Shown: piece after piece, positions 16,000-62,359 of the stretch
How the letters are laid out: each line of letters starts with the position of its first letter
How positions within the stretch are numbered: the stretch's first letter is position 1
Made by a program: the position numbers and the translations under genes
Source: Macrostomum lignano
Lineage: Eukaryota
Assembly: GCA_002269645.1 (NCBI GenBank)
Contig: NIVC01001267.1
Location: forward strand, 124,001-188,000
Reading direction: 5' to 3'
Length of the DNA stretch: 64,000 nucleotides
The notes under the pieces: model-generated
The model's database searches: none
Told to the model about the DNA's origin: nothing
What the model saw: only the letters and a program-made list of their open reading frames with translations

Positions 16000-16680
16000 C
16001 TCATCGGGGAATAGCTGAGTTGTCAAGGCTTATAAGGGGATTGCTGAGTTATCAAGGCTTATAAGGGGATTGCTGAATTCTTGGGAGAGGGGAGTTGGGT
16101 TGTTGGGATGTCAAGGCTAATTACTGCGCTGGGAGAATTGCATAGATGTCGAGGCTGGAGTTTAATTGCTGCGATGTCGAGGCTTAATGGGGTTATTCCT
16201 GAGATGTCAAGGCTTACTGGGGGAATTGCTGAGATGTTAAGGCCTACTGGGGAAATGCTGAGATCTCAAGACTTACTGGGAAAAGTTTTGAGATCTTCAG
16301 AGCTTACGGGGGGAATTGCTGAGATCTCAAGGCTTACTGGGGGAATTACTGAGATGTCAAGGCTTACTGGGGGAATTACTGGGATGTCAAGGCTTACTGG
16401 GGGATTGCTGAGATGTCAAGGCTTACTGGGGAAATGCTGAGATCTCAAGGCTTACTGGGGGAATTGCTGATATGTCAAGGCTAACTGGGGGAATTACTGA
16501 GATGTCAAGGCTTACTGGGGGAATTGCTTTGATGTCAAGGCTTACTGGGGGAATTGCTGAGATCTAAAGGCTTACTGGGATCTCAAGGCTTACTGGGGGA
16601 ATTGCTGAGATCTCAAGGCTTACTGGGGGAATTTCTGAGATCTCAAGGCTTACTGGGGGAATTGCTGAGATGTCAAGGCT
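16000..16680 (+). repeat. ~30-31-bp minisatellite (GGGGAATTGCTGAGATSTCAAGGCTTACTG)
   Basis: About 20 copies, with degenerate copies further upstream. Confidence 0.95.
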
Positions 16681-24408: not shown

Positions 24409-25571
24409 ATGGAAGAACAACCTGAATCTTCTAAATTGCCGAGGAAAAGAAAAGGAAATTACGGCAGCTTTTGCTGCGCTGCTGGCTGCTCAAACAATTC
24501 AGCAATGTCTTTGGCAGGAGTGTCCTTTCATACTTTTCCAAAGGACAAGGAAATAAGGAAAAAGTGGCTGATAGCGCTGAGAAGAAAAGATTTTGAGCCA
24601 TCGCCATCCACGCAAGTCTGCTCAATGCATTTTGAGGAATCTTGCTTCAAAGAGCAATTTGCAGGCTTTCTGCCTAGCGTCAAAAGACGGCTATATCCAA
24701 ATGCCGTTCCTTCCATCTTCCCGGCGTTCCCTGACCATCTGCAGCCGAAAGCTGAGAAGAAACGGAAGACTGCCACCGCGACCGCAGCTCGCGAAGTTGA
24801 TTTCGCTGCATTTTGTAAATCAACAGAGAGCAGCGAGCCGGAAGCTCCAGTGGCTGCCAAGGAAGATGAAGATCCTGGACCGGACATCCATGTTAACTGC
24901 GTGCCCAGAGAAGAATTCGACAAGAAGGTGAGAGCACTTAAAAATCTTCGGCACATATACAGAAGGCTTCTATCTACTCATAGCCGGTTCAAAAAAGTGC
25001 AAAGGCTGTTAAAATCTTAAGGCGGTCACTCCAGAGCAAGTACCTCAAAATTCGATCACTGCGCTCAAAGAATAGGCAAATTAAACAAAGAGCCAAGACC
25101 CTGAAAGATGTGATTCGAGAGTTAAGGGCCAAATGTATTTTGAATGAAGCTGCTGCATCTCAGCTGAACTTCTTGACTTCCGATTCACTGCTTAGCAGCA
25201 TTTTGCCAAGCAAGATTACTAAGAGGACAAGAATATTCTCCCACGAAGTGCGGAAATTCGCCTCCACATTGCACTTTTACAGCCCGAAGGCCTATGCGTA
25301 TGTGAGACAGTACTTTCAGCTTCCGCATCCAGCTTCGCTTAGAAGATGGCTCTCGAATGCGAAATGCTTTCCAGGATTTTGTGACCAAGCCTTTCAGGAA
25401 CTTTCTCGACGACGCAGCTCCAATGATGACCGATCCTTCGACTACTGCAACGTTGTAGCTGATGAAATGTCACTGGAAGCGATGGTTGAGTGGAATTCAA
25501 ATAAAGGCAGGTTCTTTGGCTATGTTGACAAAGGCGATGACAAGTCAACTGATCAGGAGGCAACTTCAGCA
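24409..25571 (+). pseudogene. P-element/THAP9-like transposase, 5' part (THAP + coiled coil + start of catalytic domain)
   Basis: THAP CCAAGC..SFHTFP..W..CSMHF..AVPSIF (24409-25020); FASTLHFYSPKAYAYVR..LPHPASLRRWL..PGF..VVADEMSL (25110-25571). It resumes after the insertion as ALVVMAVGLKSYWKLPLRYY (27588-27650). Confidence 0.9.
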
Positions 25572-27579
25572 GGGGGGGGGGGGTTTCACAAACTCGAAAT
25601 TTCACAACGTCGAAAGCACCCTCCTTCATAAGGTCGAAATTTCACAAGGTCGAAATTTCACAACATCGAAAACTCGAAAAGCATCCACTTTCACAAGGTC
25701 GAAATTTCACAACATCGAAAACTTTAGCAAGACTTCATAAGGTCGAAATTTCACAACATCGAAAACTCGAAAAGCATCCACTTTCACAAGGTCGAAATTT
25801 CACAACATCGAAAACTTTAGCAAGACTTCATAAGGTCGAAATTTCACAACATCGAAAACTCGAAAAGCATCCACTTTCACAAGGTCGAAATTTTACAATA
25901 TAAAAACTGAGAATTTAGCAGCCACAAGTATGACAAGGTCAAAATTTCACAATGTAGAAAACTAAAGTTTCTATTGTGTCAATGTTTATATTATTATTTT
26001 TTATTTTAATAGCTTATTTGGTTCAACTAGTTTTTAATCACATCTTTAAGTAGTTCAACGTCAAGGAGTGCTGAGTGCTCTTGTAGAAGGGCCTATATTT
26101 TATTCTACGAAATTATTATTATTCTTAAAAGTTAAATTCCCGCCAAATAACAAATACCTTATATTTTTGTTTTAATGCATTAATTTGTTTTAAACGTAGA
26201 AATTTAGTTTTTAGTAAGGCGAAATAATTTTGTTTTAGTTAACTGTTGTTTAAACGCATGATACCCGAACCAATAGAATAAGACTTTGTCTACTATAAAT
26301 ACAAGGCCAAAATAGAACATTTCTTTAACCGTTCGGGTTCATTCTCAGTAACCTAGAAATTAAGATTTCTCTGGTTTTCTGACTTAGTCATTTAAGCAGG
26401 ATTGCGAGTTGTAAATACCGTGTTGGATAGAAAGGGCGTTTTGCCAGTACAGTTAAGCAGGGATTGCCGAACAAGCGTTTTGCTCAGTAAAGAAAGGCGG
26501 ATTGCCCAGTAGAAAGGGAGGATTCCCAAGGAAATAAATTCAGGCTGTTGCAGCTAAGCGTGATGCAGTTCTAAGTCGTGAAAGACAGTATTAAAAGCCG
26601 GAAACCCCTCGGTCTCGGTAACGCTGTGTTTGGACTGTATAGTTTAGGAGTTTAGTAGTAGTCAGCAGTGTCTTGCCACTCGGGCACTGAAGCTACCCAG
26701 GGTAATTCGTATCGACGATAGCCCATAGCGTATAAAGTACATGTAAGTATAAAAGTAGGATTCTTAGAAATAATAGATTCAGTACAATTTAGTGAAATCT
26801 TAAAAGAGAGAAATACATTTCTATAGCAACTTGGTATCAGCTGTGGGATCCAGTAGAATTAGAGAGAAACCCGCCTGCAACAACTTGGTGATTCAGCGGT
26901 GGAATTATAAGCTAGAAAGTAGATTCACCTACGACACTCTGCTAAGTGTCTTATGACTACTGGGATGATGGGTTAGTTTACATAAGTAAGTTTAGCTATA
27001 TAGTTGGGAAGCATTTTGGAATTAGAAGCAGTAAAAAGCACCTAAAATTTGGTATCAGAAGTAGGATAAATTTAGGGGAAAAGAGATAGCCCTATAAAAA
27101 CTTTGGCAATGAATGGGTAGGATAAATTAGACAAAGTGACAAACAGAAAAACACCTACAACATATATAGGCCTACTAATCAACAATAGAAAGAAAAGCCT
27201 CGAAGGCTTACAACTATTATGATTCAACAAAAAAGTGACAATTGAAGACTAAGGCCTAATATTATTGATAAAAATATTGTGAAAGTGAAGTATAGGCCTA
27301 TTTAAAAAAATAAAGAAGTGCATAGCTGAAAAAATATGATTATCCTCTACAAGGTATTTGAAAAAGATAAGACTCTTACTTTTTGAAAGTGGCTGCTATT
27401 TGAGTTTTCGATGTTATGAAATTTCGACCTTATGAAGTCTCTTGCTAAAGTTTTCGATGGTGTGAAATTTCGACCTTGTGAAAGTGGCTGCTATTTGAGT
27501 TTCGACCTTGTGAAATTTCGACCTTGTGCAATAATTTGCTTTTCGACGTTGTGAAATTTCGACCTTGTGAAAGCAACCC
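25572..27579. mobile_element. Nested non-autonomous TIR element with 8-bp TSD and subterminal inverted repeat arrays
   Basis: TSD CTTCAGCA (25564-25571 and 27580-27587). Ends are GGG(TTG)TTTCAC / GTGAAAGCAACCC. GGTCGAAATTTCACAACATCGAAAAC arrays at 25590-25950 are mirrored at 27400-27575. Confidence 0.88.
26410..27160 (+). mobile_element. LTR-like segment followed by several primer-binding-site-like motifs
   Basis: TG-start candidate at 26410. After ...CTATAGCAAC comes TGGTATCAGCTGTGGGAT (26832), and later TGGTATCAGAAGTAGGAT (27050), close to the tRNA-Leu-type PBS TGGTGTCAGAAGTGGGAT. No pol follows. Confidence 0.5.
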
Positions 27580-30557: not shown

Positions 30558-30685
30558 CCATGGATGAAGGAATAGAAATGATCGCTCATCTGAAAGCGAG
30601 TCTATGGCCAAGACTTCCTAAAAATTGGGATATCCTTCCATAAATTTCATTGGCTGCTTGAATTTAATAATACCCCCCCCCCAAT
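30558..30685. repeat. Dispersed repeat family (CATGGATGAAGGAATA...GCTCATCTGAAA..GTCTATGG)
   Basis: Related copies at ~20615-20700 (+), ~22545-22600 (-) and ~43090-43212 (-). Confidence 0.75.
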
Positions 30686-30745
30686 TTCTTAATGGCTGAA
30701 GCTTGTACGCGGGGGAAATTCACGATTAACGCGCATGCTAGGCTG

Positions 30746-31777: not shown

Positions 31778-33089
31778 TTAGTCCTTGTTTACGAATGTGA
31801 TGGTAACCTTATTAGTGTCACCACAAGCCTCAATCCGCATTAGTTTGTGCGGTGTTCCTTGAACCACAGTAGTTTCACAGAAGTCCGTCCCGGTTGTAGC
31901 AGTACTGCCATCGGGTGTAGTCACAGTTGACATGGTCCTTGTACTGATCTCACGAGTTTGACTGTCGACTTGACCGCATAGAATTGCGCTTACGTTTTTC
32001 TGCTTCGTGATAGATGGCGAGATATAGCGCTCAAGGGCTTTAGAACTGGAATGGCCAGTAACTTTGGCGATGTCACTACGCTCAATTCCAGCCTCATGCA
32101 ACTCCGTGGCGCACATCTTTCGCAGACTTTGGTTGGTAAATCTAGAGCTCCCATTCGGACGAACCAGTGCTACAGCATCCTTCACCAGAGTAGAGAGTGT
32201 ATTCCTTCCAATCGGCGTGGACAGAAACCAAGATTTCCCAATATTTGATGTCCAGTGCTTGTTGGCAGCAAGCAACTTTGCAGTTTTCCGGGCGTAGAGA
32301 TGCATACTTCCGATAGATGCAAACAATACATTTGGTGCAATCCGCTGAATGGAACGCCCTCACCAGTTTTGGTTCCTTGTTCATACCTTTTAAGCCTCCT
32401 TGATTAGTCTTCGTTCTTCGGTTCTCCGCATAAACTAAACACTCATCTACTCCACGCCCTTCAATCCGAATTTCGCGTTCAAATTCCAGGTCCCTCAGTT
32501 CGGATCCACCTCGCAGTCCAAAATTCTTCCCAATCAGCCAGATAGTCGTGCGTACCAACTGCTCCGGAGACTCGACACCTAGAACGCCGTCTGACCACAG
32601 GTCCTCTTCAATGGTTGTCGACACGGGCTCTGCCTTCCTCAATCCAGCGCCCTTGCCCTCCGCAGTAGAAATCTTCATGGCCGCGTCCAAAGCCTTTCTG
32701 CTCTTTTCGAACTCGATGTCCGTCCAGATGCACCACTGACGGCGATACACATGGCGCATGTGGTACTGTATTGACGAAAAGAAATCCTTTAATGTCCCAG
32801 CGGAGTAGCGATCGTTCCTCTTTGTCCTGACCTCCAGAATGAAACTTATTAGAAAGTTCAAATCGGACTTCGAGAACTCATCTGCGTCTTTCAGTACCAT
32901 GAGCGCGGGTCCACCGTCGGAACACCAGAGTACTTTCTTCGCCGCATGCCACTCTTGGAAAGTAGCAAACATCCAGCGACATTTCTTTAGCGTGTTCGTT
33001 GGAACCTTTTCTTCGATTAGTGAACTGACTTCTTCGTCAGTCAGATTGACAAATCTTTCGGTAGCCATTTTAACTATACTGTCCGTCAA
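31778..33089 (-). pseudogene. Crypton (DUF3504-type) tyrosine recombinase, one frameshift near 32300
   Basis: N-terminus RFVNLTDEEV..KVPTNTLKK..W; catalytic box LIGKNFGLRGGSELRDL; TKTNQGGLK; W..STPIGRNTL; FTNQSLRKMCATEL..IAKVTGHSS..LERY. Confidence 0.92.
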
Positions 33090-33339: not shown

Positions 33340-34432
33340 CACACTTGCTGCCGGCACACAAAAAAAGATGGCGTCCTGAATTTAAACGGAAGAGTAATTC
33401 TCAATAGCGAGTCGCGCCGCCCTGTGCACGAATTACAGCTTCGCAGCGACTGCGCATCGAGTGGATGATGCGGCGCACCAGGTCTTGAGGAATCGCAGCC
33501 CATTCTTCGGCAATCGCTGGGGCCAACGCTGCGATATTAGGAATATTTCGCCTGGCCAGTCGTCTGCCCAGCTCATCCCAGATATGTTCTATCGGGTTCA
33601 AATCCGGGCTGTTGGCCGGCCAGTTCATGTGCACATACTGCACATGTGTGTCATGAAACTGCTGCACAATAGCACATCTGTGTGGCGTCGCATTGTCGTC
33701 CTGCAGCAGGAACCCCTGACCAACGCTCGCCAGCCCAAAGGGAACCGCAACATCACGTAGAACTGCTACGTACCTTGCGCCCGTCATGGTGCCGTCAATC
33801 ACTTCGACGAAGGACAGGTGGTTCCATGATGCTGCAGCCCAGACCATCACCGACCCGCCACTGCCACCGCGCCTCGATACCCACTGCACTGCGTCCTGTT
33901 GCTCGTAGCAAGAGTTGCGCTGGCGCCACACGCGAATTCTCCCATCATTCTAATGCACACAGAATCTGCTCTCGTCGGTGAACACCACCAGCCGCCACTG
34001 CTGTTGAGCCGACCAAAAGCGATGCTCGTGACACCACTGCAGCCGTGCGGCTCTGTGAGCTGCTGACAGAGCAGGGAACTTTAAACTTCGATAGCTGTCG
34101 AGTCCTGCGGCTCGAAGTCGACGGGAGATGGTGGACTGCGACACCGTGACATGCAAACGGTCGCTCAAATTTCTCTGCAATGTCGGCAGGCTCACGAAAG
34201 GGTCATTCCTGGCAATGTTTGCAACGAAGTTATTGCTGGCTGCATCCATCACACGAGGCCGTCCTGATTTCGGCAAGTTGTCAACAAAGCCACTGGTCGC
34301 AAATTTGGACGCGTAACGCTGCACAGTCGTCAGTGGCACGTCAAGATGAGCAGCGATTCGTTTCAGCGACCATCCGGCATCCTGTCGTAACGTCACAATT
34401 CTCCACCGCGTCTCAGTGCTAACAACCGGCAT
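33340..34432 (-). mobile_element. Tc1-family transposon, transposase with a single in-frame TAG; D-35-E spacing
   Basis: ORF 33950-34432 (HTH, VVFTDESRF) is in frame with 33401-33931 (QDDNATPH..WPANSPDLNPIEHIW). A TA-flanked end is likely at 33340; no matching 5' TIR was found. Confidence 0.92.
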
Positions 34433-34800
34433 TTTGCTAAGCTGGCTTGTTGACGTAGACCCTGTTTTTTACTCTCCCATGAAAGCTGACTGCACAAGAA
34501 TCCATAAGAGCCTGTTGATCAGGCTCCCATAAGCGCCTCAGTGCAGCCTTGCCAAGTCTCCAAATTTCATCAGCACGTCGACCACATGTGTCTGCATCAG
34601 TTAATTGCAGACGCAGTGCTAATTGGCGCACAGGGGTGTACTGAATACACTAGCGCTTATGGAAAAAATCCGGACTTCTGGCAGAACCGTCGAATATCTC
34701 GACGGTCCGGAGGGCTGGCGACTTGATTCTTGTTTGAGAAGGTGCGCAACAAAAAGTTAGCCATATCATTTGGCTTTCACGGCGGTAAACAGGCCGGATA

Positions 34801-34950
34801 ACTGCGGCAAAGCGCTATACATTGGTAACATATGAGTGCGGCAAAGCGGAGATAGAAGTGCGCAGAACTGCGGCAAAGCGCTATACATTGGTAACATATG
34901 AGTGCGGCAAAGCGGAGATAGAAGTGCGCAGAACTGCGGCAAAGCGGATA
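34801..34950 (+). repeat. 66-bp tandem repeat (2.3 copies) carrying five GCGGCAAAGCG motifs
   Basis: Unit starts at 34801, 34867 and 34933. Confidence 0.92.
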
Positions 34951-35397
34951 AAAACGGCAACTATAGAAGGAATTGTAAATATATACGTGGCAGAAATTTG
35001 GCAGCTAGTAAGTTAGGTAGCACAATTCACTGTTGGTGCCTAGCACAATGTCTATAAAAGTAGATATATATAGCTATGGGGAAGTTTCATTTGTTGCTAT
35101 ATCTGGCTAGCCTGTGTAGTATACGAGACATGCCTATCGCCTAATTAATCTATCAAATTGTTGTTAAAATAAAGCGGAGAAAACGGAGAACAGAGCATGG
35201 GCATAATAAAAGTGGCACAATATATATATATTAGACAAGCATTACAGGATTCAGTTTTCAGTTTACATTATTGCATTAACTATAACAATTTGTAGCAATT
35301 TAGCTAATCCAGGTAGCGCGCTTGCAGCATCAACTATGGCTATATAGTTATATATAGGCGGCGGCAAAACAATTATTACGACAAAGGGTCGCGCAAG

Positions 35398-35434
35398 AAA
35401 TTGTGCTTGGCACCTCCGGTGCCAGGCACAATTT
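35398..35434. other. 17-bp-arm hairpin AAATTGTGCTTGGCACC-TCC-GGTGCCAGGCACAATTT
   Basis: One G-T mismatch; the stem extends with GCGC/GCGC. It shares its core with the 15-bp inverted pair at 35035-35049 and 42788-42802. Confidence 0.9.
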
Positions 35435-35557
35435 CAAGCGCGCCCTAGATATAAATAATTGACAACTGATTGATTGAAATTTTTCTACCTGTCGCATTTC
35501 GACACAGAGGTCTGTTGCTTCTGCTATTGCGCTGCTGCTATTGCGTCACTCTGTCAA

Positions 35558-38306
35558 TTAGCCCCCCCCCCGCTTACATCCGGTGCATCTGGCTGGGCCA
35601 GACGTCGCCGCACTCGACTTCTTTTTCTTCTTCTGCTGCTGCTCCTGCATCAACGATAGCCTGGCTTCGGCGGCCGCTTTGCGCTTTGATTTGCATCGCA
35701 TCAGCTGTACTTCACCGTGCGTTACGGGCTGCGAGAACGACGGCACGAAGCAGACTTCAGTCGGCGTAGTTGCTGTCCTGGCGGCTGGACCGGATGCGGC
35801 ATTGGTGACGGCGGTGCACCTGCGTGTAGCTTTGGCTGCTGGCACGACTGCTGCTGCTGCTGCTGCTGTTGTTTTGCTGGTGGAGGCGGAGGAGGCCTTG
35901 GCAGTCGTCGAGGAGGAGGCGGCTCGCCGCGCGACAAGCTGGTCGACTGTGGCCTGAACATTAGTCCTGGTAACCAGCATGGCATTCGTCGCGTAGTGCC
36001 TCATCATCATAGGCACGGAATTCTCGAAAAGCGCGGCCACCTGATCGGCCATCTCTGGTCGGCCAGCCGCCGCTATGTCCTGCTTTGAGCTGCGAAAGAT
36101 GGTCGGGCAGACTCCGGCTCGACCTAGCAGGTGCTGGGCGTAGGCTGCAACAGAGTGGCTAAACGTCGAGACGGACAGCTTCTCGCCTCGCAGAGTGCAC
36201 AGGACGAACGGCGAGCTAGACACTGCGGGCAAGTCGCCTGCGGCGATGCAACTGCTGCGCCAGGCTAGCAGCAGGTCGATGAACGACGTCGGCAGTGTGA
36301 GGACGCTGCAGCCGACCGAGGCGATCTTCTTGTGGCTCACCTCGCGACCGGGAAGCCGGATGGTCGAATAGCCATTTTCCGCGTTGTCTCGGCGACAGGC
36401 GCTACCCGGCCGGATGTGCGCTACGCGGAGACCGCGCCACGGCCGAACGCGCAGCGGATGCATCGCGGTCGCGTGAAGAGCGAAGCGGTTGCGCATCGCA
36501 GTGAAGCCGGCGGCGCAGCCACGTCCGGCGGGCACGTCGGGGCCGGCGGAGACCAGCTCGGAGTAGTCGTCGAGAATTTTGCGCCACTCAACGGGGGTCA
36601 GCAGTCTGCATTGCTTCTTGTCGTGGTGCAACGGAGCGTCCAGCCGGCGTTCAAAGTCGTGCCGCTGCCTGACTGTTTTCAACCGCTTCTGTAGCAGGTT
36701 GCAACGGCTGTCAAAGTCGGCGGCAATCTCGGGCGGCAGCGCGAGGCGTTCGATTAGCGACTGCAGATGTTGTCGGTCGTGCACGATGTATGCCAACATG
36801 TACTGGGTACACCGAATCAGGGCCTGTGCCCGATTTCTAACCGTGCCAGAACTCTTGCTGGTGGCGCGAATCTCTGCGACGGCTGCTGACGGGTCGGCCA
36901 GACAGAACACCAAGTCCCGCTCGTGGAGGCCAACACCAGCCACCTCTGCCATCTTTGAACAAACGGACAATACGAGTGACAAGGTGTCAATCAGCGCTTC
37001 AGTGTGGCCGTCGTACTCGGGATTGCGGACGCCAGTCGAGTCATCCCAATGGAGCTCTTGCAGAACCTTCAGCTGAGCCAGCAGCGGTGCGTCGATGGGA
37101 TACTGTCGCAAAAGTTCGGAATTGCTGCGCAACTTGATGACGGCCAGAGCATCCCCCGCCGCGATCGCTGCCTTCACGGCCGCCGAGTCGCGGCTGGCAT
37201 TCGCCGCCGAGGCCGCCGAGGCCGCCGAGTCGCAGCTGGCATTCGCCGCCGAGGCCGCCGAGTCGCAGCTGGCATTCGCCGCCGAGGCCGCCGAGTCGCA
37301 GCTGGCATTCGCCGCCGAGGCCGCCGAGTCGCAGCTGGCATTCGCCGCCGAGGCCGCCGAGTCGCAGCTGGCATTCGCCGCCGAGGCCGCCGAGTCGCAG
37401 CTGGCATTCGCCGCCGAGGCCGCCGAGTCGCAGCTGGCATTCGCCGCCGAGGCCGCCGAGTCGCAGCTGGCATTCGCCGCCGAGGCCGCCGAGTCGCAGC
37501 TGGCATTCGCCGCCGAGGCCGCCGAGTCGCAGCTGGCATTCGCCGCCGAGGCCGTCGAGTCGCAGCTGGCATTCGCCGCCGAGTCGCAGCTGGCATCCGC
37601 CGCCGAGTCGCAGCTGGCATCCGCCGCCAAGGCCGCCGAGTCGCGGCTGCTGCTGCTGCTGCCTTTGGCAAGAGGCGCCAAGGAATCGGCTGTATGCAGT
37701 TATGGATGGATGGTGTGCGAAAATGAAGTCACGGGTGAGCTTTTGAAAGCAATGTGCTCCAATTTTAGATTGACAGCGACTCATACCTGCTGGCTTTTTA
37801 GCGTGCTTTGCTGCGTGCTTTGTCGTATCTCTATAAAAGCACTTGCAGTCGGCGCAGTACTGTTCCCGTCGGCGAGCACGATTTGCTGCCTGTTGCTCAA
37901 CAGCCACAGAGTCTGCCGCAGGTCGCAGGGTGGAAAGTCGCCAAAGCCAGGACGTACGCCTTTCCAAAGACCAGCCGTCCTCGTTGGCACTGTCGATATG
38001 CTGTTGCTTGATCCAGTCTTTATGCCGCGCAGCAAAATGCCTCTTCAGCGTGTCTCCACGCATCTGGGCGGTGCAGCCCGGAACAGGGCACTGCTTGGCA
38101 TATTTTTTGTTGCGATCGGTTGCTGCGGCACTCGTGCCTCTGACTGTCGCTGAACCCGCCGCTGCCGCTTCCGCGCCTCTGGCCGACGCCGCCGAACTTG
38201 CCGCTGCCGCTGCCGGGCTGCTGTCCAGCAGGCAAGTCAAAGGGCCGTCGCCATCGCCGCTGCTGGCCAGCGCTGGACTGTCCGCGGCCGCTGCTACTGT
38301 GTACAA
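35558..38306 (-). CDS. C2H2 zinc finger - Ala/Ser repeat - tyrosine recombinase fusion, ~883 aa; exons 38306-37787 and 37689-35558
   Basis: Phase-1 intron G|GTATGA...ACTGCATACAG|CC joins the two ORFs in frame. ZnFs: CPVPGC..TLKRHFAARH and CADC..KHAAKH. YR-like order: RNRF..HPLRVR..GLRVAHI (R), SHKK (K), PTIFR (R), ALFENS, MRHY (Y). Confidence 0.75.
37190..37640 (-). repeat. 33-bp coding minisatellite (DSAASAANASC)n, ~10 copies
   Basis: Frame-preserving repeat inside the recombinase gene. Confidence 0.95.
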
Positions 38307-39847
38307 TGGGTGTTAGATGGCATGGCAACCCATCAATCAATCAATCAAACAATCAATCAATGTAGTGAATAGAGTCTTAAATATCGGATCGGATGACGCA
38401 GTTTCGCCTCACCTCCAATCGATGCTGAAATCATAAATTCGCTGCTACTTGAACTATCGTCTTGGGCCTCTTCCTCGTCGTAGCCGAACAAGAGCCGGAG
38501 GTACTTTCCGAAGGACATCATCAGGCGATGGAATAAATAAAGAAAACGGATTTTGGACCTGATCACTCTTTGCAATTGTTTACAGTGAAAAATGGAAGGG
38601 AAGAGCCATAGACTGTTGACTGACTTTATACAAAGAAGCGAAGAGTTAGCCATCCAAATCCCGGCTATCCCCCCTCCTCATAGACTAATCTCACCGGGCA
38701 TGTACTCTGCTGTTGTCTATGGATTTTTGTTGTCTATGGTTGTATATGTTGACTATCGATTTTTTTGACTGTGTTCCTTAACCCAGCCCCCACCCCCGCA
38801 TGCATCAGTGCCCCACACTCTCTTTCTCCCTCTATCCAAAAAGCAATTTTAGCCAGCCACCCCGATTTTCCTACCCCCGCCCTCTGTAAAGCCGAATGGT
38901 CATAGGGCACTGCATATTATGCAAGGCAAAAGAAAATAATACACGCAACTATTTCTGCTGTTCAATAAAAAGCACCAAAGCGATATAGACGTATTGATGA
39001 ATATATATATATCTACCCCCCCCCCCTAATATAGTAGACAGACATAATATTATAGAGTAAATATCAATGAGAGAATATTGTGGCCCAAATATGTTGCCAA
39101 AAAAGCGCATTTGCCCTGTAGATAGAAAATGTTTTCGACTAAAGATATATAAATTACGGATGCAGCACCATTACTAAGTTGCTCAATAGGAAGCAGCTGA
39201 TCGAGATGGAAAAAAAGCTGTTTGGTTTGGTTTGGTATACAATAGCGAAGAAGCGGCGAAATATTTAAATAACGGTTGCTTAGGCGGCCCCATCTGGCGC
39301 ACAGAAGCGACAAAAAATGCACATCGAACTCCTTAGAAACAAAACCAACACTGCAGTTGCATTCAGCCAGCCAGGCTGAGATCACGTCGATTTCCAAACG
39401 ACGACGAAACAAACTGAAAAACAAACACACACAAACACTGGAACACGAGAACAGGTGTACCTTTCTGCCTGCAGCACAACCTCGGTACCTGCATCGCATC
39501 GCCTCAACAAAGTAGGGGAAGTAAGGGCCAAAGAGAGAGGGAGAGAGAGAGAAGGGGAAAGAGGATAGAAGGGATAGAAGATAGAGAAGAAACAAAGGTA
39601 AGTGTGGGCAATGTGCATCTGACGTGCTGCAGCAGCTCACTAAATTGTTGCAGCAGTACTGCAGCCCCTAACGACTGGCCCACCTCCGCCGCCGGCACAA
39701 TAACGATAATGTCCTCCATCCATCCATCCATCCATCAATCAATCAATCAATCAGTGTTTCTATTCAACAATAGTAGGCTGCTTCGCGTTCTTCTTCTTCT
39801 TCTTCTTCGGCGACGGCGGCGGCATCGTCGGCAAACAGCCGCTCCTG

Positions 39848-42576
39848 CTACTGCGGCGGTGGCGGTGGCGGCGGCGGCATCTGCTGCTGCTGCTGCTGCT
39901 GCACATTTTTCTTCGCCGCCTGCGACGCCGCATCTTGGCGTCCTCTGCCGCTGCGACCTTGACTGGCGTCGCACCCGTCGCAGTCGAACAGATTATGCGG
40001 GATGTGCACGACTGCAGTCATCCTGCGCAAGAAGTCCCGACTGATCTGCCCTGGGGCCGCGTGGCCCGCCACAACAATGGCGTGTGGCCATGGCTCTTTT
40101 TTGTGGCTTTGATATTTCTCATTGATCGTGAACTTATCACGGTTGAACAGTAGCAGCAGTTGACCCGGAATTGGACGGCTGGCATCGAATTCATCGACAA
40201 AAATGCACTTATGCAAGTTAAAGCGCAGCCCGTCGAAAGGAAAACTTGTTGTCAAGTCCGGCACGAACACAGGCTCCCTGCCAAAGTGCAGGTGCACCAT
40301 GGCCGTCTTGCCAACTCCGGAAGGCCCCCACAAATATATTGTGGGCGGCGGCATCTCCCTCTGCATGGCGCGGCACACGGCTATCTGTACGTCGCACAGA
40401 CCGCTGCCCAGGTGCGTCACCACAAGTTCGTCTGGCAGCGGCGGTGGCGGCTGCGGCTGCTGCTGCGACACCCTCTGGCTGCCGCCGTTGCTGCGGCGGC
40501 GACACGCGTCCTCCGACGAAGAAGAAGGACCGGAACAGGCGGCGAAAGTGGCGGCGGCGGCGGCGGCGGCGCTACTACGGAACGACACTGGCGGCCGCTC
40601 GCAGACACCGCACAGTGCCTTCTGCTGCTGGCCGCCGAGCCTGACGAACCCCGAGAGCGCCTCTGCCCTCATCCGACGCAGAAGTTGAATGTTGTTGAAG
40701 TAGTCTAAAGACTGCTTTGTCAACATCGGATTGCCCGCGTTTAGCACGGGGTCGTCAAGATCCGGCTGCACCGCCTCGACCGGATACGACATCGCCCAAC
40801 GATAGAGTACGATGGTGCGCGACAAGCAGCTGTCATCGATATTAATTGTGCAGCATACCGGGTCAAGCGCAGTTATCCGGCGCAGCTCGGCTTCGACGCT
40901 GCGGACGCTCCTGATCTCGACTTGCGTCCAGCGGCGCACAGCAAAGGTGTCCGCGTCGCGGCCTGACGCGAAAATCGGACGCAGCTGCCCGACCAAGTCG
41001 CAATTAGTGTGGAGGACGGCGGTGCGGACAAATGCGTGAATGCTTGACGTCTCCCGACTAACATCGTCGGTCAGGGGCGCATATGGATCGACAATGTGCG
41101 TCTTGGATGGCTCGAACTCATTCTTAGTGACGCCTATTTTTTGACATTGTTTTTTGTGTGTTGATCGTCGAGTTGAGAAATTAGATGCAGAAGAAGAAGA
41201 CGGCGCAATATTATTCAGAAATGGGATGATGCAGAGAGAGAGAGAGGGGGCGGAGGCGCGCGACAGATGAGGATTGTGGGGGAAGAGGGATTATACGATT
41301 ATGGCAGTGTTGCAGTCGTGGCAATTCAATAAATGGCATTGATATATCATTAATTGTGATATTCATATAGTCTATGGCAATAGTTTGGCAAATCAGCGCT
41401 GTCGATCGCGCATAGGAGCTGCACAGAAATGATATAAAAAGAAAAGAACAGCAATGCTTAATAAAGTAAGTAGATAAATAGGAAAGGGCAACAACCCCAC
41501 GCTACTCACTGATGGCCAGTTGAGTCGCCCATTCACTCCAGGCTGACATTAACATCATCTTGAGCGCGCCAGGTTGCTTCACGTAGGCTATCCTGAGCAC
41601 AGACATGCCGCGGTAGGCCCGCCGATTCGCCAGCTGTCCATTGCTGCCTGCAACGGAGGCGTCTACGGCATCCTCGGGGTGCAGCAGAATGCGAGGCACG
41701 AGCAGCCTGGACGTGGTGTCCCGTGTCGGCTGCGGCTGCTGATGATGCTGGTGAGCAGCAGCCGTCTCGTAGGAGGCGGCCGCGGCGCTCCATTCGTCGG
41801 TATATCCGCCGCAGTAATAAGGTGGCGGCGGAGGCGGCGGCGGCGGCGGCGGCGGCGGCGGCTGCGAAGACCGAGTGTCCGACGGGATAGAACAGCCTGT
41901 CGTCAAAGTGGACGATTGGTGGTGGTTGTTGTGAACAATGACAAATAATTTCACAATATGGGTAATGAGCTATGAACTAAAAGTGTAAGGATCGATGGTC
42001 AACAACGAATGCTCAGCAACTGAGCAGCAGCATTCAACGACTCCTACCTGGCGATAGGATCGAACTGCTGCGACTGCAGGGCGACGATGGCAGCGCGTTC
42101 GCCGCCGTTATCGGGCGTTGACAATGGCGCTTTGGCGGTGTCGGCCCTTGTTGCTGCTTAGCGGCGCTTAGCGACGCGGCCGTGCCACTTCGGGATACGA
42201 AGCAGCGACTCGTTATCGCCGGCTTGATGCCAGCTGACCCGATTCTCGGCTGTCGTTTTAGTTCCGGCTTTGCAGCGACTGCAGCCGCTGTCTCCTGATG
42301 ATGCTGCTGCTGACTCTGCTGTTCAGTCTTGAATAATGGCAGGCGACCACTTGCCTCGTCGTCTTCGTCGCTGTCTGGTACGAAGACCCCAGTGATGACG
42401 CAATCAGCCTGCTCATCCGCCGCCTCCAGCGTGAAGAGGTCGGCCTCTAGTGCAGCCCGCTCCGCGTCTTCTTGCCGCTTTGGAACAGTCGATGGGGCCG
42501 CGGCCGCGGCGGCGGCGGCGGCCGCGGCTTCAGCAGCGTCAACCTGCTCGCAGGCTTCCAGGAGGACGGCCGCCAT
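39848..42576 (-). CDS. Rep-like protein with SF3 helicase, ~733 aa; exons 42576-42048, 41896-41510, 41133-39848
   Basis: Two phase-1 introns (G|GTAGGA..GACGACAG|GC and A|GTGAGT..AAAATAG|GC) join the frames without stops. Walker A WGPSGVGKT, Walker B IFVDEF, B' LLLLFNRDKFTINEKY, motif C IVVAGH, Arg finger FLRRM. The true start may lie further upstream. Confidence 0.8.
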
Positions 42577-42779
42577 CTCGTCCGCGGTTGCGTATTGGCT
42601 ATCGCCGGGCCATGGAGGACTTGCATCTTTTATATTTTATTATCGTAATCAGCTGCTCGCTGGCTGCTGGATGCTCGCTGCAGCTAACAACGGTCGGACG
42701 CGCGCGTGGGCAATAATGCAGAAAAAATGAATGAGCAGCCCAGCCGTATACTATAGCTACCGGGTTAATATATATATCT

Positions 42780-42975
42780 CTAGTAAGATTGTGCTAGGCA
42801 CCGCCGCCTCTGCCGCCGCTTTGAGCTTTTTGTCTATGGTCCATCCGCAGCATATATATATCTTTAAAAGAATTGTGCTAGGCACAATCCGCTTTGCCAC
42901 AGTGCGCACTGCATCCGCTTTACCGCATCCGCTTTACCGCATCCGCTGTACCGCAATTGCTAATTGCTTTACCGT
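42780..42975. other. Right-end motif array of the Rep-YR element
   Basis: ATTGTGCTAGGCAC occurs twice (42788, 42872), each preceded by a TATATATATCT box, followed by CCGCTTT(G/A)CC repeats, which are the reverse complement of the left-end motif. Confidence 0.8.
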
Positions 42976-44677
42976 AGCGCAAGATAGCCCGTGTTCTTGA
43001 ATCTCGTGTGCCTGCGTTGCTCCGTTCCGGCGCAGCAAAAAAATTTGGGAAATTCCCCCCCTCTTGGTAGTTCTACTGTTAAGAACTTAGGGGGGGGCTA
43101 TTATTAAATTCAAGCAGCCAATGAAATTCATGGGGGAATATCCCAATTTTTAGGAAGCCTTGGCCATAGACTCGCTTTCAGATGAGCGATCATTTCTATT
43201 CCTCCATCCATGATGCAGTCCCCATTTTAATTATATTGGCTGGGTGAGTCTATAAATATTTACCCCGATTCAACTTTATTGGTTTTCGCTTGAACGCGAG
43301 GGAAGTCTAAATCAGTTCCTTTTAAGTTTTTTTTTCGTGGGAAAGACTAGGAATTTACGACGTATTTATAGTCCCACTAACCCTACAGCCTAAACAGATG
43401 ACTTGCCCATCTAAAAGAATATAAGATCTATGGTTGATTGACACAAGTAGTGTTTTTAAAATCGGTGATACAACCTTTATTGAAGTTTATTTTTTAGATT
43501 TAACTTAAGCTAAACTTAAACAAACAACGAAAAAGAAAAAGTTATTTTCTTATTTTTAAAGATAATTGGGGAACACGCAATGGAAAGTTTTTGATAGGAA
43601 CCAGAATGGGGGTTGTAGCAACTCCATAGTCGACAGCTGTACTCATAAAACGACCATTAAGCAACCACATAGAAAGAGAGGAGCGCAACTTCATTCCGAA
43701 AAACATCTCTGCATCTCTGCTGTGAATGCCAGCGTTGTGAACATGTAAAATGGTACAATTCTGGGGCTGCCAAAAACCGGCTGCAGAATAGACGGTTCGA
43801 TGAGCCCTAGCAGATCTGTAGCCCTGCCGGTGCTACGGTTTAGAATCTTCGGGGCTCCGGCCAGTTTTGTATCGCTGACTCGCCGATCTGGAGACTGCAA
43901 ACGGGCTACGATCGCCGACCGGAGATCTTAAAGGGTGTAAGATCTCCTTTGGAGACTACAAACGGTTATGGGTCCGTTTTGGGATCTCCGGGGCATGATT
44001 GGGTCTCATCTGGAGATCCTAGATTCTGTTGTACCTTCGGAGATTCTGCACCGTTTCCCGATCTCCTTCACGAGTGCAAAAACTAATGTTTGATTTAGAA
44101 TTTCCGGCTACCGATTTACCCAATTTTTAAAGAAATTATAATCTTTCTATTTTGTATAGTATTGTGTATGCGCTTCTCGCTTGGGGTTGTCTTAAGGCGG
44201 CCTGGCAGGTCTTTAAATCTCATGGCTGGCACCTATGTTGTATCTGTGGTTGAGGTTGTGCTAGCACAGGGCTCTTAGGTTGTCTCAGGCTCTCTCTTGC
44301 CAGAAGCCTACTTATCAGTAGCGTTGGTAGTTGCTGTCACCAGTCCCTTCGGATCTCAGCCTTCGGTGAGGTGAAGATCCCGTCGGAACGAAATAACAAA
44401 GACAAGCGAACACAGCACTTCAGGCAGATTAGCGATTTCAGACTAATAGTCAGCAGATCCTGTCGGGCTCAGTGGGTCGGCTGGGAGGACGGTGTTAGCC
44501 TCAGAGCAGAATCAGAGGTCTTAGTTTAGGATGAGAACTGAGTCAGGACAATGGGAGAAATAGGGCAATTGCAGAACTGCGTTTACTGAGAGAGAACAGA
44601 GCTAAAGAAATGACCGAAATGGCCGACCGAACAATTGCGCTGCGGTCAGGCCCGCACTGCCACTCTAACGGACTGCC

Positions 44678-45301
44678 TCATCGCAGGCGCTTGACCTGAC
44701 CCCTCAGACTGCTGCTGCCTGCCCCTCCCGCCTGTTCTGCGAGCGCATGCGCGAAAGGGGCCTCCCTTCTGCGTCTTAATATAAAGAAATGAAGCGAACT
44801 GAACTGAGCTGATCTGAACCAAGGCATGAGGGGGGCTCGCATATATAGAGAGGAAATATTGCACCATCGAAAACAAGACCCCCGCTGCGGGTCATTGATG
44901 GCTCTGTTGCTATTTTTAGCAACTGGCGCACGGGTTTTGTCCAGAGGAGGAAGGGGTCTGGTCTGGGTGCACGTGATTTCCCCCACAAACACGGGCCTAA
45001 CGCACAATGATGAAATGACAGCTGCGCGTCGCCCCGGGTCGTTGTCTATATAATCGAAGATATATTTGACGCACTCGACGATTGCGTCAGCTCGGTTGCG
45101 TGCCGTTCCTAGCTCTCTGACGAGGACCGGACCTCTAGCAGCCTGCCTGGGATCCGTCAACCAGAATGAGTCATCGCGAAAGCCGGCGCTTGGGTTCATT
45201 CTGGCGAACGCCGTCATCTCCAAATTGTACGTCAACTGCCATTCCTTTCGGAAATCAGCGTCCTGCCGGCCGCGAATACCGGTCTCCTCGTCGAAGAACA
45301 T
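44678..45301 (-). CDS. Orphan ORF of unknown function downstream of the second Rep-like copy
   Basis: 207 aa; the first ~110 aa have globular-looking composition; no family recognised. Confidence 0.35.
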   Translation of the reverse strand: MFFDEETGIRGRQDADFRKEWQLTYNLEMTAFARMNPSAGFRDDSFWLTDPRQAARGPVLVRELGTARNRADAIVECVKYIFDYIDNDPGRRAAVISSLCVRPVFVGEITCTQTRPLPPLDKTRAPVAKNSNRAINDPQRGSCFRWCNISSLYMRAPLMPWFRSAQFSSLHFFILRRRREAPFAHALAEQAGGAGSSSLRGQVKRLR

Positions 45302-45717: not shown

Positions 45718-47323
45718 TCAATCGATGCGTACAGACTGTCTGCCGCTGCGGGTTCTTTTGCAGCGCCCCCTCGACGCGTGTACTTGCTGCAACTCATCGA
45801 AGAATAGACAGCAATGGATACCGAGCTTCAGTCCGTCGAATGGGAAAGTCTCCGATAAGTCGGGAGTGTACACTGTCTCGCGGCCGAAGTGTATTGCGAC
45901 CATAGCGGACTTCCCAACGCCGCTTGGTCCCCAGAGATACAATATAGCCGGAGCTACACGTGCCTGCCGCATTGAGGCGCAAAGCTCGCGCTGGACTGCC
46001 CTGCCGCCACCCAGCACTACGCGGTTCGCGCTAATGTTGCTGCGCGAGGTATCTGCTGCGGCAGCAGCCGCGGTCGATGCCACTACCGGAGGCAGCTTGC
46101 AAACACCGCACAAACTCGGTCGAACCAGGGTGGACGGCAGTGGGCTAATGCCCAACTCCTCGGCCGGTATCTGGTGCATCATCTGCACTGAGGAAAAATA
46201 CTCAAGTCTGTCGCATCAGCAGCGGGTTGCCCACAGACCAACTGTGGATCGTCTGGCCGAGGGGTCACAATGCCCAACGGGAGGACATGGCCCATCTGTA
46301 GAGCACGACGTTGCGAGACAGGCAGCTATCATCGATGTCCATCGTTGCAGCTGCGGGATCGCTCATAGTGACGCGCCTGATCTCAGCCTGGCCGGATCGC
46401 ACACTGCGAATTTCGGCGCGCGTCCAGCCCATCACGGCGAAGGTGTGCTCGCTGGAGCCGGAGCCAAACAGTGCGCTCAGCCGACCGATCAGGTCAAGGG
46501 TGTTGTGCAGCGCGTTGGTGAGAATGAACACCAACAAGGATCTGGTGCCTTTAATTAGGCAAGAAGCAGTCGGGGCGTAAAGATCCATCATAAGCGTGTG
46601 ACGCGACAAAATCATTGTCTGCCAAGCCTATGCATTATTAGATTTACATAAAGAAGCGGCAAAGCGAGTTTTTACTTACCAATCGCAAACTGAGTAGCGT
46701 ATCTCCTTCTCAATGCGCTATCCAGCATCATCTTCATCTGCGAAGCGTTTCGCACATATGCCATCTGGACTATGGACATTGCACGGAAGGCTCGGCGACT
46801 CGCGTCAGCAGTAGCGGTGACACCGGCGGACAGGGGCTCTGCTGGGTGCAGCGGTACGCCCGGTGTCAGGAGCCGCGATGTCGTGCACTTCGGTTGCTAC
46901 GAAACCGGAATAGTCGCCTCGTAGGCAGCCGCAGCCATTGAATAGTCTGCCGGCTTAGCCTTGTCTGTGTTTGGTAATAGTAATTTATACTTTGACAAGT
47001 TGCCATACAGATGTAGCCCATATTTCGCAATACTTAAAGCTATATCACATTCACAAAACAATAGTTCAAAGTCGATTTTGTATTTTATGCATGCATGTAG
47101 ACCTACCGGCGATGGTGGCGGCGGTGGAAGACGATGTTCTCGCTGCTGCTGGCTAACGCCACCTCGGTGAAGAGATGCTTGACGTCGATGGGGATGCCAT
47201 CAGAGGTGATAGTTTAAACGGCAGCGGCCGCTGCGAAGCGATTGGGTGTAACAGTCTTGGCTGCAGCGGCATCCCCGCCTTCTTTATGGTGCTTTGGCCA
47301 ACAACGTCAGTCATTTTTTCCAT
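45718..47323 (-). pseudogene. Divergent paralog of the Rep-like SF3 gene; exons 47323-47107, 46964-46680, 46627-~45718
   Basis: TTSRLL.P..LHP; SRRAFRAMSIVQMAYVR..MKMML..ATQFAI; EIRSVRS..EIRRVT..DP; DIDDSCLSR.VVLYRWAMS; LCGVC..PPV; LYLWGPSGVGKSAMV.IHFGRE..PDL..FPFDGL..FFDEL. Premature stops and frameshifts; homology is lost after Walker B. Confidence 0.88.
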
Positions 47324-53061: not shown

Positions 53062-54181
53062 ATACGTTTAAAACAAACCGTTTGACCAATTTTCTCTATT
53101 TTTTGACCAACTTGTAGGAAATTTATCAGAGATGGTATGATTAGTTTTTGGTATGTTTTTATCAATGTTAAGTACCTGTAAAAGGTGAAAAACAGGTGTT
53201 TTCCCTATCTAATTAGTGTATTTTTCTTGCAGTGAGAGCTCAATATGTCTATGGCCATAGACTAATCTTCAATTCAAGTTCTTGAACTGATGCTACGAGC
53301 TATAAATAATTAAATATTCAAAAGTATATGCACAAGGGAGAGAAAAATGTTTAGTGGCTGCGTGTGTAATAAATTAAGACCTTGGCTGACTGGCGGACTG
53401 TATAGACAATTGCTATTTATAGATTTCATTCAACAGTGCATTGGCTCTGCCCGCACACTGAGCGGCCTATCGCTGCTATGTATTTGACAGCGGCGCCAAA
53501 GCATATATGGCTGATGTTAAAAATGGTCTGTCTGTGTGTGCCCCGGGTCTTGGGTGCTTGCTGTCTGGGGGATGCTTGCTGTCTGTGTGATGCTTGCTGT
53601 CTGGGGAATGCTTGCTGTCTGGGGGATGCTTGCTGTCTGGGGAATGCTTCCTGTCTGAGTGATGCTTGCTATCTGGGGGATGCTTGCTGTCTGGGGGATG
53701 CTTGCTGTCTGGGGGATGCTTTCTGTCTGGGGGATGCTTGCTGTCTGGGGGATAGCTTGCTGTATGAGGAATGCTTGCTGTCTGGGGGATTGCTTGCTGT
53801 CTGGGGGATTGCTTGCTGTATGAGGAATGCTTGCTGTCTGGGGGATTGCTTGCTGTCTGGGGGATAGCTTGCTGTATGAAGAATGCTTGCTGTCTGGGGG
53901 ATTGCTTGCTGTCTGGGGGATTGCTTGCTGTCTGGGGGATAGCTTGCTGTATGAGGAATGCTTGCTGTCTGGGGGATTGCTTGCTGTCTGGGGGATAGCT
54001 TGCTGTATGAGGAATGCTTGCTGTCTGGGGGATTGCTTGCTGTATGAGGAATGCTTGCTGTCTGGGGGATAGCTTGCTGTATGAGGAATGCTTGCTATCT
54101 GGGGGATCACTTGCTACATTACATCATTATTAAAATTATTACATTCTTTATTTGCTCCCAACGGGTGGCGTAGATTGCTAG
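53004..54181 (+). mobile_element. Non-autonomous Helitron-like element
   Basis: A|TCCAATATACTAAAAATG(GT)n 5' end; 3' hairpin plus CTAG|T; A|T target; no TSD. Confidence 0.78.
53550..54105 (+). repeat. 17-18-bp minisatellite (GCTTGCTGTCTGGGGGAT / GCTTGCTGTATGAGGAAT)
   Basis: About 30 copies inside the Helitron-like element. Confidence 0.96.
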
Positions 54182-58369: not shown

Positions 58370-58975
58370 CATGTAGTCTTTGTGCACCATTGTGGTCTTT
58401 GTACACCATGGTTGGTCTTTGTGCACCATGGTGGTCTTTGTGCACCATTGTGGTTTTTGTACACCATGGTGGTCTTTGTGCACCATTGTGGTTTTTGTAC
58501 ACCATGGTGGTCTTTGTGCACCATTGCGGTCTTTGTGCACCATGGTCTTTGTGCACCATGGTTGGTCTTTGTGCACCATGGTGGTCTTTGTGCACCATGG
58601 TCTTTGTGCACCATGGTCTTTGTGCACCATGGTTGGTCTTTGTGCACCATGGTGGTCTTTGTGCACCATGGTCTTTGTGCACCATGGTTGGTCTTTGTAC
58701 ACCATGATTGGTCTTTGTGCACCATGATTGGTCTTTGTGCACCATGGTGGTCTTTGTGCACCATGGTCTTTGTGCACCATGGTTGGTCTTTGTACACCAT
58801 GGTTGGTCTTTGTGCACCATGGTTGGTCTTTGTGCACCATGGTGGTCTTTGTGCACCATGGTCTTTGTGCACCATGGTTGGTCTTTGTGCACCATGGTGG
58901 TCTTTGTGCACCATGGTGGTCTGTGCACCATTGTGGTCTTTGAGCACCATTGTGGTCTTTGTGCACCATGGTGGT
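58370..58975 (+). repeat. 15-20-bp minisatellite (GGTCTTTGTGCACCAT(GGT))
   Basis: About 33 copies; it produces the spurious HKD/CTK ORFs. Confidence 0.97.
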
Positions 58976-59039
58976 CTTTTACATCATTTATGGTCTTTTT
59001 AAAAATAGCAGTCTGCAAACTTGCACAAAGAGGGGTTGT

Positions 59040-60230: not shown

Positions 60231-60717
60231 AAATGTATGAATCTTGGAGCCGGTAAACATTGGAGTTAATGTTTCGAGCTCTTTCAAAGGGCAACGACAA
60301 AAGGATGCAACAATTTGTCCAACGATATCCGTAGAGTTACACAAGAAGATTAGCCACAAAAAGATACTTGAGAGCCAGGAGATGAATGAAATTCGAAATG
60401 GAGCGTGACCTCGGCTCCGGACTCGAAATTGGAGGCTAATGGCAAAATATGGCAGAAAGGCACTTAAGAAACGGCTGAGATAAAACAGATAAGGAAGCAA
60501 AGAGGGGAAAAGCATAAAAAGCAGCAAATAATGGGGGGCGCAGGATTTCAATTCGATAGATGAATGCCCGAAATTCGAACCAAAATTCTTGTCTCTCTGA
60601 GAACTGAATCCTTGCTCAATTAGGGAATAGGAGAGTGTATAAGTGTGCTCTCAGAAATGGAAACTGGAAATGCACTGGGGCGAAAGCTAGAGATGGAGTT
60701 GATTGACTAATTTAATG

Positions 60718-61935: not shown

Positions 61936-62359
61936 TGTCTCCCTCCTCTCCAGATTCCATGTCTTACAGTTGCCGCCCCAGTCCGGTGCAGGCAAGTGCC
62001 TGAGCAAGTCATTGCTGCCTATGCAGAGGCGTTCCTTCAGGATGTGATCCGCTGTAAACACACATAGTTAACGCCATTATTTGTCATCTGAACCCGGATG
62101 GACCCCTGTCAACAGGACACAGGATTAACATTAAATAACTGTCTGCAGTGGACTACTGAATGATAAAATGTGCATATTCGAAGTGGCCATTAAGAATCGA
62201 GTAACACTCGCAAATAACAAGCCATCGGACATGACTGCCACCTAATTTGAATTCCTTGTCGTGTTAAGAGCTCGATTGCAGCACCCTGAAATTAATGAAT
62301 TGTTTGTTGTAAAAGACAATAAATCTCTGAGTCTCGCTGCCCACAAAGGCACAAGAAGA

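Follow-up and report, generated by a model that had tools for sequence, protein, structure and literature searches.

A 64,000-nucleotide (nt) stretch of Macrostomum lignano DNA (contig NIVC01001267.1, positions 124,001 to 188,000 of the forward strand; hereafter the window) was analysed in this study. On its minus strand, at 39848-42576, we identified a three-exon gene encoding a protein whose C-terminal domain is, judging from profile comparisons, a superfamily 3 (SF3) helicase of the kind otherwise seen in the Rep proteins of circular Rep-encoding single-stranded (CRESS) DNA viruses. The domain in front of it is conserved only within a small family and bears no detectable relation to HUH nucleases. 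The evidence leans slightly towards the helicase gene being part of a mobile-looking or virus-derived unit of about 8.2 kb, with two genes, in the nuclear genome of an animal-like host, and we infer roles for the terminal motifs of this unit, for the N-terminal domain and for the second, recombinase-like protein.

Structure of the helicase gene

The gene and its first exon were delimited as follows.

39848..42576, minus strand: three-exon helicase gene; exons 42576-42048, 41896-41510 and 41133-39848, with GT-AG introns in phase 1 and a single stop-free frame
42048..42576, minus strand: exon 1, amino acids (aa) 1-176; predicted low-complexity, acidic, Ala/Gln-rich N-terminus

The joined exons amount to 2202 nt, that is, 733 codons and a stop codon with no internal stop, in agreement with the first-pass annotation, which had proposed three exons and two phase-1 introns restoring one frame. 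Both introns, 42047-41897 (151 nt) and 41509-41134 (376 nt), begin with GT and end with AG: exon 1 closes on CAG before GTAGGA and intron 1 terminates in ACAG at 41897, while exon 2 closes on ATCA before GTGAGTAG and intron 2 terminates in AAATAG at 41134, from where exon 3 runs to the stop at 39848. Exon 2 and exon 3 both have homologs, and the exhaustive HMMER search described below recovered relatives of the gene. No homolog of exon 1 (aa 1-176) was detected; a related M. lignano helicase gene (locus L092, contig NIVC01001938.1) likewise opens with a long acidic low-complexity stretch.

The site of intron 2, a GT in phase 1 right after an Ile codon, recurs in the L092 gene and in a decayed second copy of the helicase gene in the window (copy 2). 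A reading of the gene as a chance open reading frame (ORF) was rejected in view of the homologs of exons 2 and 3 and this shared intron site; the gene model is more than chance, and the three-exon gene is real. Since the position of intron 2 is common to homologs with no more than 45% amino acid identity, the intron is old; it is not universal in the family, because the frame of a metagenome homolog (L093) is open across that site. Spliced Rep genes occur also in free viruses that replicate in the nucleus, so introns alone are no proof of chromosomal residence, whereas an intron site conserved across copies does prove it.

An SF3 helicase domain of the CRESS-Rep type

The following features were located in the C-terminal part of the protein.

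39998..40360, minus strand: SF3 helicase (P-loop ATPase) of the CRESS-Rep type, aa 564-684, predicted from hhalign and HMMER matches to Reps
40327-40304, minus strand: Walker A, GPSGVGKT, aa 575-582, aligned with genuine Reps
40204-40187, minus strand: Walker B, IFVDEF, aa 616-621, aligned with genuine Reps
40075-40061, minus strand: position of motif C, VVAGH, without Asn
40033-40019, minus strand: Arg finger, FLRRM, aa 673-677, aligned with genuine Reps
39971..39997, minus strand: C-terminal H-x4-C-x-G-x(0,1)-C motif (HNLFDCDGC), from family alignments

An exhaustive HMMER search over 1.84 billion representative proteins (matches at E ≤0.001) returned 17 matches to the helicase protein, all of them in the ATPase part. 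Thirteen are short, unannotated and fragmentary relatives, and the top match is a hypothetical protein of M. lignano with 42% identity. The other four are Rep-like: P0011 and P0015 contain Pfam Viral_Rep (PF02407) plus RNA_helicase (PF00910), P0016 contains RNA_helicase, and P0014 has HUH-like and SF3-like features. Compared by hhalign with the SF3 domains of these four, the ATPase of the family scored 99.5% (E 3e-23, 114 columns); against a second, independent sample of 66 full-length Reps from viral contigs in IMG/VR, the score was 98.5% (E 2.6e-15, 115 columns). Identity to genuine Reps is approximately 30% over window positions 40402-40001. The retained SF3 ATPase of CRESS-Rep type that had been read from the sequence is thereby borne out, as are its intact Walker A, Walker B and Arg finger and the His in place of the Asn of motif C.

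Pfam gave no Viral_Rep, Gemini_AL1 or RNA_helicase match in the helicase protein and only weak P-loop matches, as did PHROGs and NCBIfam; sequence searches of the PDB returned poly-Pro noise, generic P-loop proteins or other chance matches; pattern scans of metagenomes and IMG/VR with the helicase returned Walker-A look-alikes only. A word-indexed protein search came back empty or with the homolog P0005 alone, and exact-protein look-ups of the ORFs in the window matched no record.

The residue at the Asn position of motif C varies within the family (H, V, C, N or T). Its absence here weighs little, because two of the four genuine Rep matches (P0011 and P0016) likewise lack Asn at that position. 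Members of the family also share a CxxC before the ATPase and the H-x4-C-x-G-x(0,1)-C motif after it, and these Cys/His motifs may bind metal.

The N-terminal domain and its proposed descent from an HUH nuclease

Homolog alignments delimit one further domain upstream of the helicase.

40601..41708, minus strand: family-specific N-terminal domain, aa 240-483, spanning intron 2

Its conserved features are a His (aa 347), S-V-R, R-x-x-T-x-x-D, W-x-x-[S/T]-Y (aa 418-422), P-x-D-x-D-P-F/V-L and the terminal CxxC (aa 480-483). The domain is kept in every homolog that reaches it, namely copy 2, P0005, the M. lignano gene at L092 and the metagenome contigs L093, L094 and L096, and the W-x-x-[S/T]-Y element is invariant among the 6-7 homologs.

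The first-pass annotation had interpreted this half of the protein as an HUH nuclease of the Rep type whose catalytic residues are gone and which is retained to bind the origin, with strand breakage possibly passed to the recombinase. Because an HUH domain precedes SF3 in recovered Reps (all 66 Reps from IMG/VR with room for it, as well as P0011, P0014 and P0015), descent from an HUH-SF3 protein is a natural guess. There is also a precedent in polyomavirus large T and papillomavirus E1, SF3 helicases whose attached origin-binding domain is viewed as an HUH-like fold that has been inactivated. Both peptides that had been assigned to motifs II and III can be found in the protein, 'SSIHAFV' spanning aa 335-341 and 'QVEIRSVRSVEAELRRITALDP' spanning aa 376-397; the first of these segments is hydrophobic and strand-like in all homologs, and the best local hhalign match, which is not significant, set 'SSIHAFVR' against the motif II block of a true Rep.

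The profile comparison with CRESS Rep families that had been suggested as a check was run for this domain and gave no nuclease match by Pfam, PDB or hhalign. In five set-ups hhalign scored between 0.15 and 0.4%, namely 0.4% against four Rep nuclease domains and 0.27%, 0.36% and 0.15-0.33% against a profile of 66 Rep nucleases as the query alignment grew, with lower values as the query profile deepened; the helicase half, which served as the positive control in the same runs, scored 98.5-99.5%. Pfam returned nothing for the domain at E up to 10, profile searches of the PDB returned chance matches only, searches of Pfam, NCBIfam and PDB revealed no likeness to a nuclease family, and pattern scans of metagenomes and IMG/VR with this domain had no match.

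The proposed catalytic sites fare no better at the level of single residues. The His of 'SSIHAFV' is replaced by Leu in copy 2, by Tyr in the M. lignano gene and by Ala in L093; in a fourth homolog it is His or a gap, depending on the alignment. The proposed motif III has an invariant Thr and neither Tyr nor Lys in any homolog. In genuine Reps (n = 64) 36-44 aa separate the motif II His from the motif III Tyr downstream of it, and 81-112 aa separate that Tyr from the Walker A Lys; the latter distance, counted from the proposed motif III, is ~190 aa here and ~145 aa in P0005, which is without the low-complexity insert. AlphaFold models were of low confidence (pLDDT 32 and 47.7) and the best Foldseek match to such a poor model had an E of 0.9; the second model is all-helical, but its confidence is too low to decide for or against an HUH fold. 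The quoted peptides therefore exist, but no profile aligns the half that contains them with a Rep nuclease, and their distances to Walker A fall outside the range of the 64 Reps. A dead HUH nuclease is not supported by any of these sequence-based measurements, and we regard it as unlikely. The domain could descend from an HUH domain so remotely that no trace is left, although none of the measurements speaks for this.

Less likely still is that the domain is a working DNA-cleaving or -joining domain of an unrecognised type, acting through His347 and Tyr422, in which case the protein would remain a nicking initiator and the second gene would be otherwise employed. Neither the Trp nor the Tyr of W-x-x-[S/T]-Y varies among 6-7 homologs that share 25-50% identity, the His is kept in most of them, conserved acidic residues (P-x-D-x-D) lie nearby, and a catalytic Tyr elsewhere is what the first-pass annotation itself had listed as speaking against its dead-HUH reading. 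Conservation, however, is by itself no demonstration of catalysis; the domain lacks both a similarity to nuclease families in the three databases named above and a second metal-ligand pair of the HUH kind.

A unit of about 8.2 kb with inverted motif-rich ends

The helicase gene lies within a GC-rich unit of ~8.2 kb, from about 34795 to 42975, with a GC content of 56-64% inside as compared with 39-50% around it. Between its ends there are two genes only. Three regions with shared motifs were identified.

34795..35110, plus strand: left terminal region; five GCGGCAAAGCG(G/C) motifs, then GGTGCCTAGCACAAT, then an (AT)n stretch
42740..42975, minus strand: right terminal region, inverted counterpart of the left; four GCGG(T/C)A(A/C)AGCGG-type motifs, two (G/T)GTGCCTAGCACAAT copies and (AT)n stretches
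35387..35445, no strand: two copies of the 15-nt terminal motif, head to head and 3 nt apart, immediately downstream of the recombinase-like gene

Read inward, the order of motifs is identical at both ends, which align over ~240 columns. The motif GCGGYAAAGCGG occurs 10 times in the window as compared with 0.51 expected, with five occurrences at 34804-34947 on the plus strand, four at 42889-42954 on the minus strand and one stray at 46656. The 15-nt motif GGTGCCWRGCACAAT occurs six times (0.42 expected): near 35035 on the plus strand, twice near 42788-42886 on the minus strand, as the head-to-head pair at 35400/35418, and as a plus-strand match with two mismatches that overlaps the site near 42872. 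The internal pair forms a 27-bp palindrome, a single strand of which folds at -30.7 kcal/mol (z = -10.5), and is a candidate recombination or binding site. Microsatellites of the (CAAT)n and (CCAT)n types lie within the unit at 38322-38371, near the first intron of the recombinase-like gene, and at 39716-39773, just past the helicase stop codon.

The second, recombinase-like gene

The other gene of the unit was modelled by uniting two overlapping ORFs.

35558..38521, minus strand: three-exon gene of 916 aa; exons 38521-38413, 38296-37787 and 37689-35558, with GT-AG introns and one stop-free frame
37212..37583, no strand: 33-bp tandem repeat in exon 3, 11.3 copies at 99% identity

Its introns, 38412-38297 (116 nt) and 37786-37690 (97 nt), are both in phase 1. 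In the predicted protein, C2H2-like zinc-finger motifs and a repeat region are followed by a tyrosine-recombinase-like domain in the C-terminal part (aa ~590-790). Its candidate catalytic residues R628, K660/661, R739, N763 and Y772 fit the order and spacing of the catalytic residues of tyrosine recombinases (R, K, H, R, H/W, Y). The first-pass annotation had mentioned a recombinase ('YR') to which nicking was possibly handed; a gene that by its motif spacing may be described as recombinase-like does adjoin the helicase gene. No match to this domain was returned by Pfam, NCBIfam, PHROGs or PDB, by tblastn searches of phages or by hhalign comparison with Cre and lambda Int, and pattern scans of metagenomes and IMG/VR with it were empty. 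At least five of the six frames run open through the 33-bp repeat array, which looks like a recent expansion and accounts for the overlapping ORFs on both strands.

Other copies and relatives

Remnants of both genes occur elsewhere in the window, the helicase paralog lying 3 kb from copy 1.

45787..46962, minus strand: copy 2 of the helicase gene, decayed; 36-47% amino acid identity (tblastn) to aa 211-620 of copy 1
44978..45301, minus strand: what is left of the recombinase-like gene in copy 2; ~110 aa from its N-terminal part, catalytic-like part missing

Copy 2 of the helicase gene is a second paralog with three in-frame stops, at least one frameshift and no sequence left after Walker B; both intron sites are still recognisable in it, with a GTAGG donor at the end of the exon-1-like stretch. 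The ORF downstream of it (44678-45301) is 28% identical (BLASTP, E 2e-11) to the N-terminal part of the 707-aa ORF that follows copy 1.

At the M. lignano locus L092 the helicase gene contains a 77-nt GT-AG intron at the intron-2 site, in phase 1 and right after the Ile codon. Approximately 4 kb downstream, on the opposite strand, we identified a zinc-finger-like ORF and an ORF homologous to the recombinase-like domain (pairwise E 2e-5), in which R, K and R are kept and the fifth position is His. Between the helicase and recombinase-like genes of this locus, at 11201-11922, lies a miniature Tc1-like element that is bounded by perfect terminal inverted repeats of 48 bp and whose ORF encodes only a helix-turn-helix (HTH) domain. 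The most complete relative outside the window is L093 (1663-2844, JGI metagenome 3300040801), an uninterrupted 394-aa frame over the N-terminal domain and the helicase that is 52% identical to the M. lignano protein.

Helicase and recombinase-like genes are thus linked three times, twice in the window and once at L092. Because the linkage recurs at copy 2 and at L092, it characterises the family and not a single locus.

A possible mechanism and the evidence against it

If the unit is indeed an element of its own, the recombinase-like protein might cut and rejoin DNA at the 15-nt GGTGCCWRGCACAAT modules, which are inverted at the ends and head-to-head inside, so that the unit would leave and enter chromosomes as double-stranded DNA, as is thought for Cryptons. 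The helicase protein would recognise the DNA of the unit through its N-terminal domain and its Cys/His motifs, with the GCGGYAAAGCGG arrays as the candidate site, and would then form an ATP-driven ring that opens the duplex without a Rep-type nick. Such opening could serve the copying of an excised form or aid recombination.

Several observations weigh against this interpretation. Neither the exact termini of the unit nor any target-site duplication was found, and only one intact copy is seen, so that any mobility, current or past, is putative. Inverted terminal sites would yield inversion and not excision, unless each site has an asymmetric core of its own. At L092 the two genes are convergent and not tandem, and the shared terminal motif was looked for at that locus and not found. 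The recombinase identity is unproven, being read by eye solely from the order and spacing of motifs, and the label is given by resemblance. With no Asn in motif C, at a position that is variable, ATP hydrolysis by the helicase may be impaired.

It is very improbable that the helicase gene is instead a virus-derived, host-domesticated gene beside which the recombinase-like gene and the inverted motifs lie by coincidence: the surroundings are full of unrelated transposon remains, the gene, like a host gene, is intact and interrupted by introns, and relatives in public protein sets are very few, but the same two gene types adjoin three times, a decayed paralog lies 3 kb away, and the two genes share composition and intron phase and are both inside the inverted ends.

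Surroundings of the unit

The window as a whole is a transposon-rich, animal-like region with no obvious host gene. An ORF at 32142-33089 (minus strand), 2.5 kb from the unit, matches Pfam DUF3504 and QRICH1, a Crypton-derived recombinase-type domain, and is unrelated in sequence to the recombinase-like gene. A 134-bp inverted repeat pair with 93% identity is present at 30559-30692 and 43079-43212, one arm lying ~100 bp outside the right end of the unit; the pair could be a small repeat that is present twice, or could delimit a larger composite of ~12.6 kb that also encloses the DUF3504 ORF and a Tc1/mariner copy. Transposon remains at 33401-34432 (minus), 24409-25631 (plus), 8131-8625 (minus) and 6310-7035 (minus) comprise Tc1/mariner (DDE_3, HTH_Tnp_Tc3), P-element/THAP transposase, a retroviral-type integrase core and a Mos1-type HTH. 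Satellite and minisatellite arrays with units of 236, 30, 18, 19 and 21 bp occupy 1-1355, 16164-16680, 53555-54115, 58376-58979, 60716-61944 and other positions, and long (ACAG)n and (GTCT)n runs are also present. Rfam had no match in the window.

Significance

Almost all known SF3 helicases of the Rep type form the rear half of an initiator that nicks DNA. A lineage with such a helicase, no recognisable nuclease and a recombinase-like partner would show that chromosomal elements re-use replication modules of small DNA viruses. We suggest, tentatively, that the unit may be the first sighting of undescribed animal DNA elements that move by a divergent tyrosine recombinase and carry a helicase derived from CRESS Reps, the nuclease half of which has been replaced or remodelled beyond recognition. 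If true, the 'helicase without nickase' design of polyomaviruses and papillomaviruses would have been reached here by a route of its own, and single-stranded DNA viruses and transposons would be connected in a new way. The takeover of the role of an HUH nuclease by another enzyme has been raised as an idea for other helicases (PMC11296320), and the unit would offer a testable case for it. The family is almost invisible in protein databases, as illustrated by 17 matches among 1.84 billion proteins, 13 of them fragmentary relatives, and similar elements may be widely missed because their genes are spliced and lie within repeats.

Comparison with known systems

The protein resembles CRESS Reps in its SF3 domain, which can be aligned over ~115 columns from Walker A to beyond the Arg finger, and some viral Rep genes are spliced as this gene is. 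Reps, however, have a recognisable HUH domain with motifs I, II and III, whereas none was detected here; the stretch upstream of Walker A is longer in the present protein, and the spacing from the proposed motif III to Walker A is outside 81-112 aa. The CxxC and H/C motifs are not seen in the recovered Reps, and motif C lacks the Asn. CRESS Rep genomes are circles of 2-4 kb with a capsid gene, in contrast to a chromosomal unit of 8.2 kb with inverted ends and a second large gene. As to a capsid gene or a stem-loop origin, no further ORF with a match is present in the unit and the sole strong hairpin has a 3-nt loop, the origin nonamer not having been searched for. An ordinary endogenous circovirus-like insert was rejected because it would carry the HUH domain, and a pattern scan of IMG/VR found no relative.

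With Cryptons the unit shares the character of a nuclear DNA element with spliced genes, with neither a DDE transposase nor a reverse transcriptase, and with the residue order and spacing of a recombinase. It differs in that its recombinase-like domain is recognised by neither Pfam Phage_integrase nor DUF3504, whereas the true DUF3504 ORF in the same window is recognised, and in having inverted motif-rich ends (~240 nt) and a second gene encoding an SF3 helicase. Cryptons are described as lacking terminal inverted repeats and have a single recombinase gene. In its proposed way of working, the unit is nevertheless closest to a Crypton. The literature searched, in which coverage was incomplete and Repbase not included, yielded no description of a Crypton with an SF3 helicase gene or of any such element combining a helicase with a recombinase-like protein.

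Large T and E1 would be similar in joining an SF3 helicase to a non-catalytic DNA-recognition domain, a likeness that holds only under the proposal of the first-pass annotation. Large T also carries a zinc-binding element. In PDB searches neither large T nor E1 matched the helicase protein or the family profile; weak Pfam matches to PPV_E1_C were seen in the distant match P0014.

Helitrons and Replitrons are likewise eukaryotic mobile elements that carry part of a Rep-type protein. The HUH nuclease is intact in both: in Helitrons it is combined with an SF1B helicase, and in Replitrons it has a single Tyr and no helicase partner (PMC10288648). A Helitron (two-Tyr HUH and SF1B) was rejected because the helicase here is of the SF3 type and an HUH domain is undetectable, and a Replitron because a helicase is present and, again, HUH is undetectable.

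As integrated elements in which a recombinase accompanies an SF3 helicase, Polinton-like viruses, virophages and Tlr1-type elements are similar to the unit, but they are 14-40 kb in length, contain capsid genes and encode a helicase of the D5 primase-helicase type (PMC5499653, PMC11296320). A Polinton-like virus was rejected since the unit has no capsid and is too small; it consists of two genes only, and its helicase is nearest to those of CRESS Reps.

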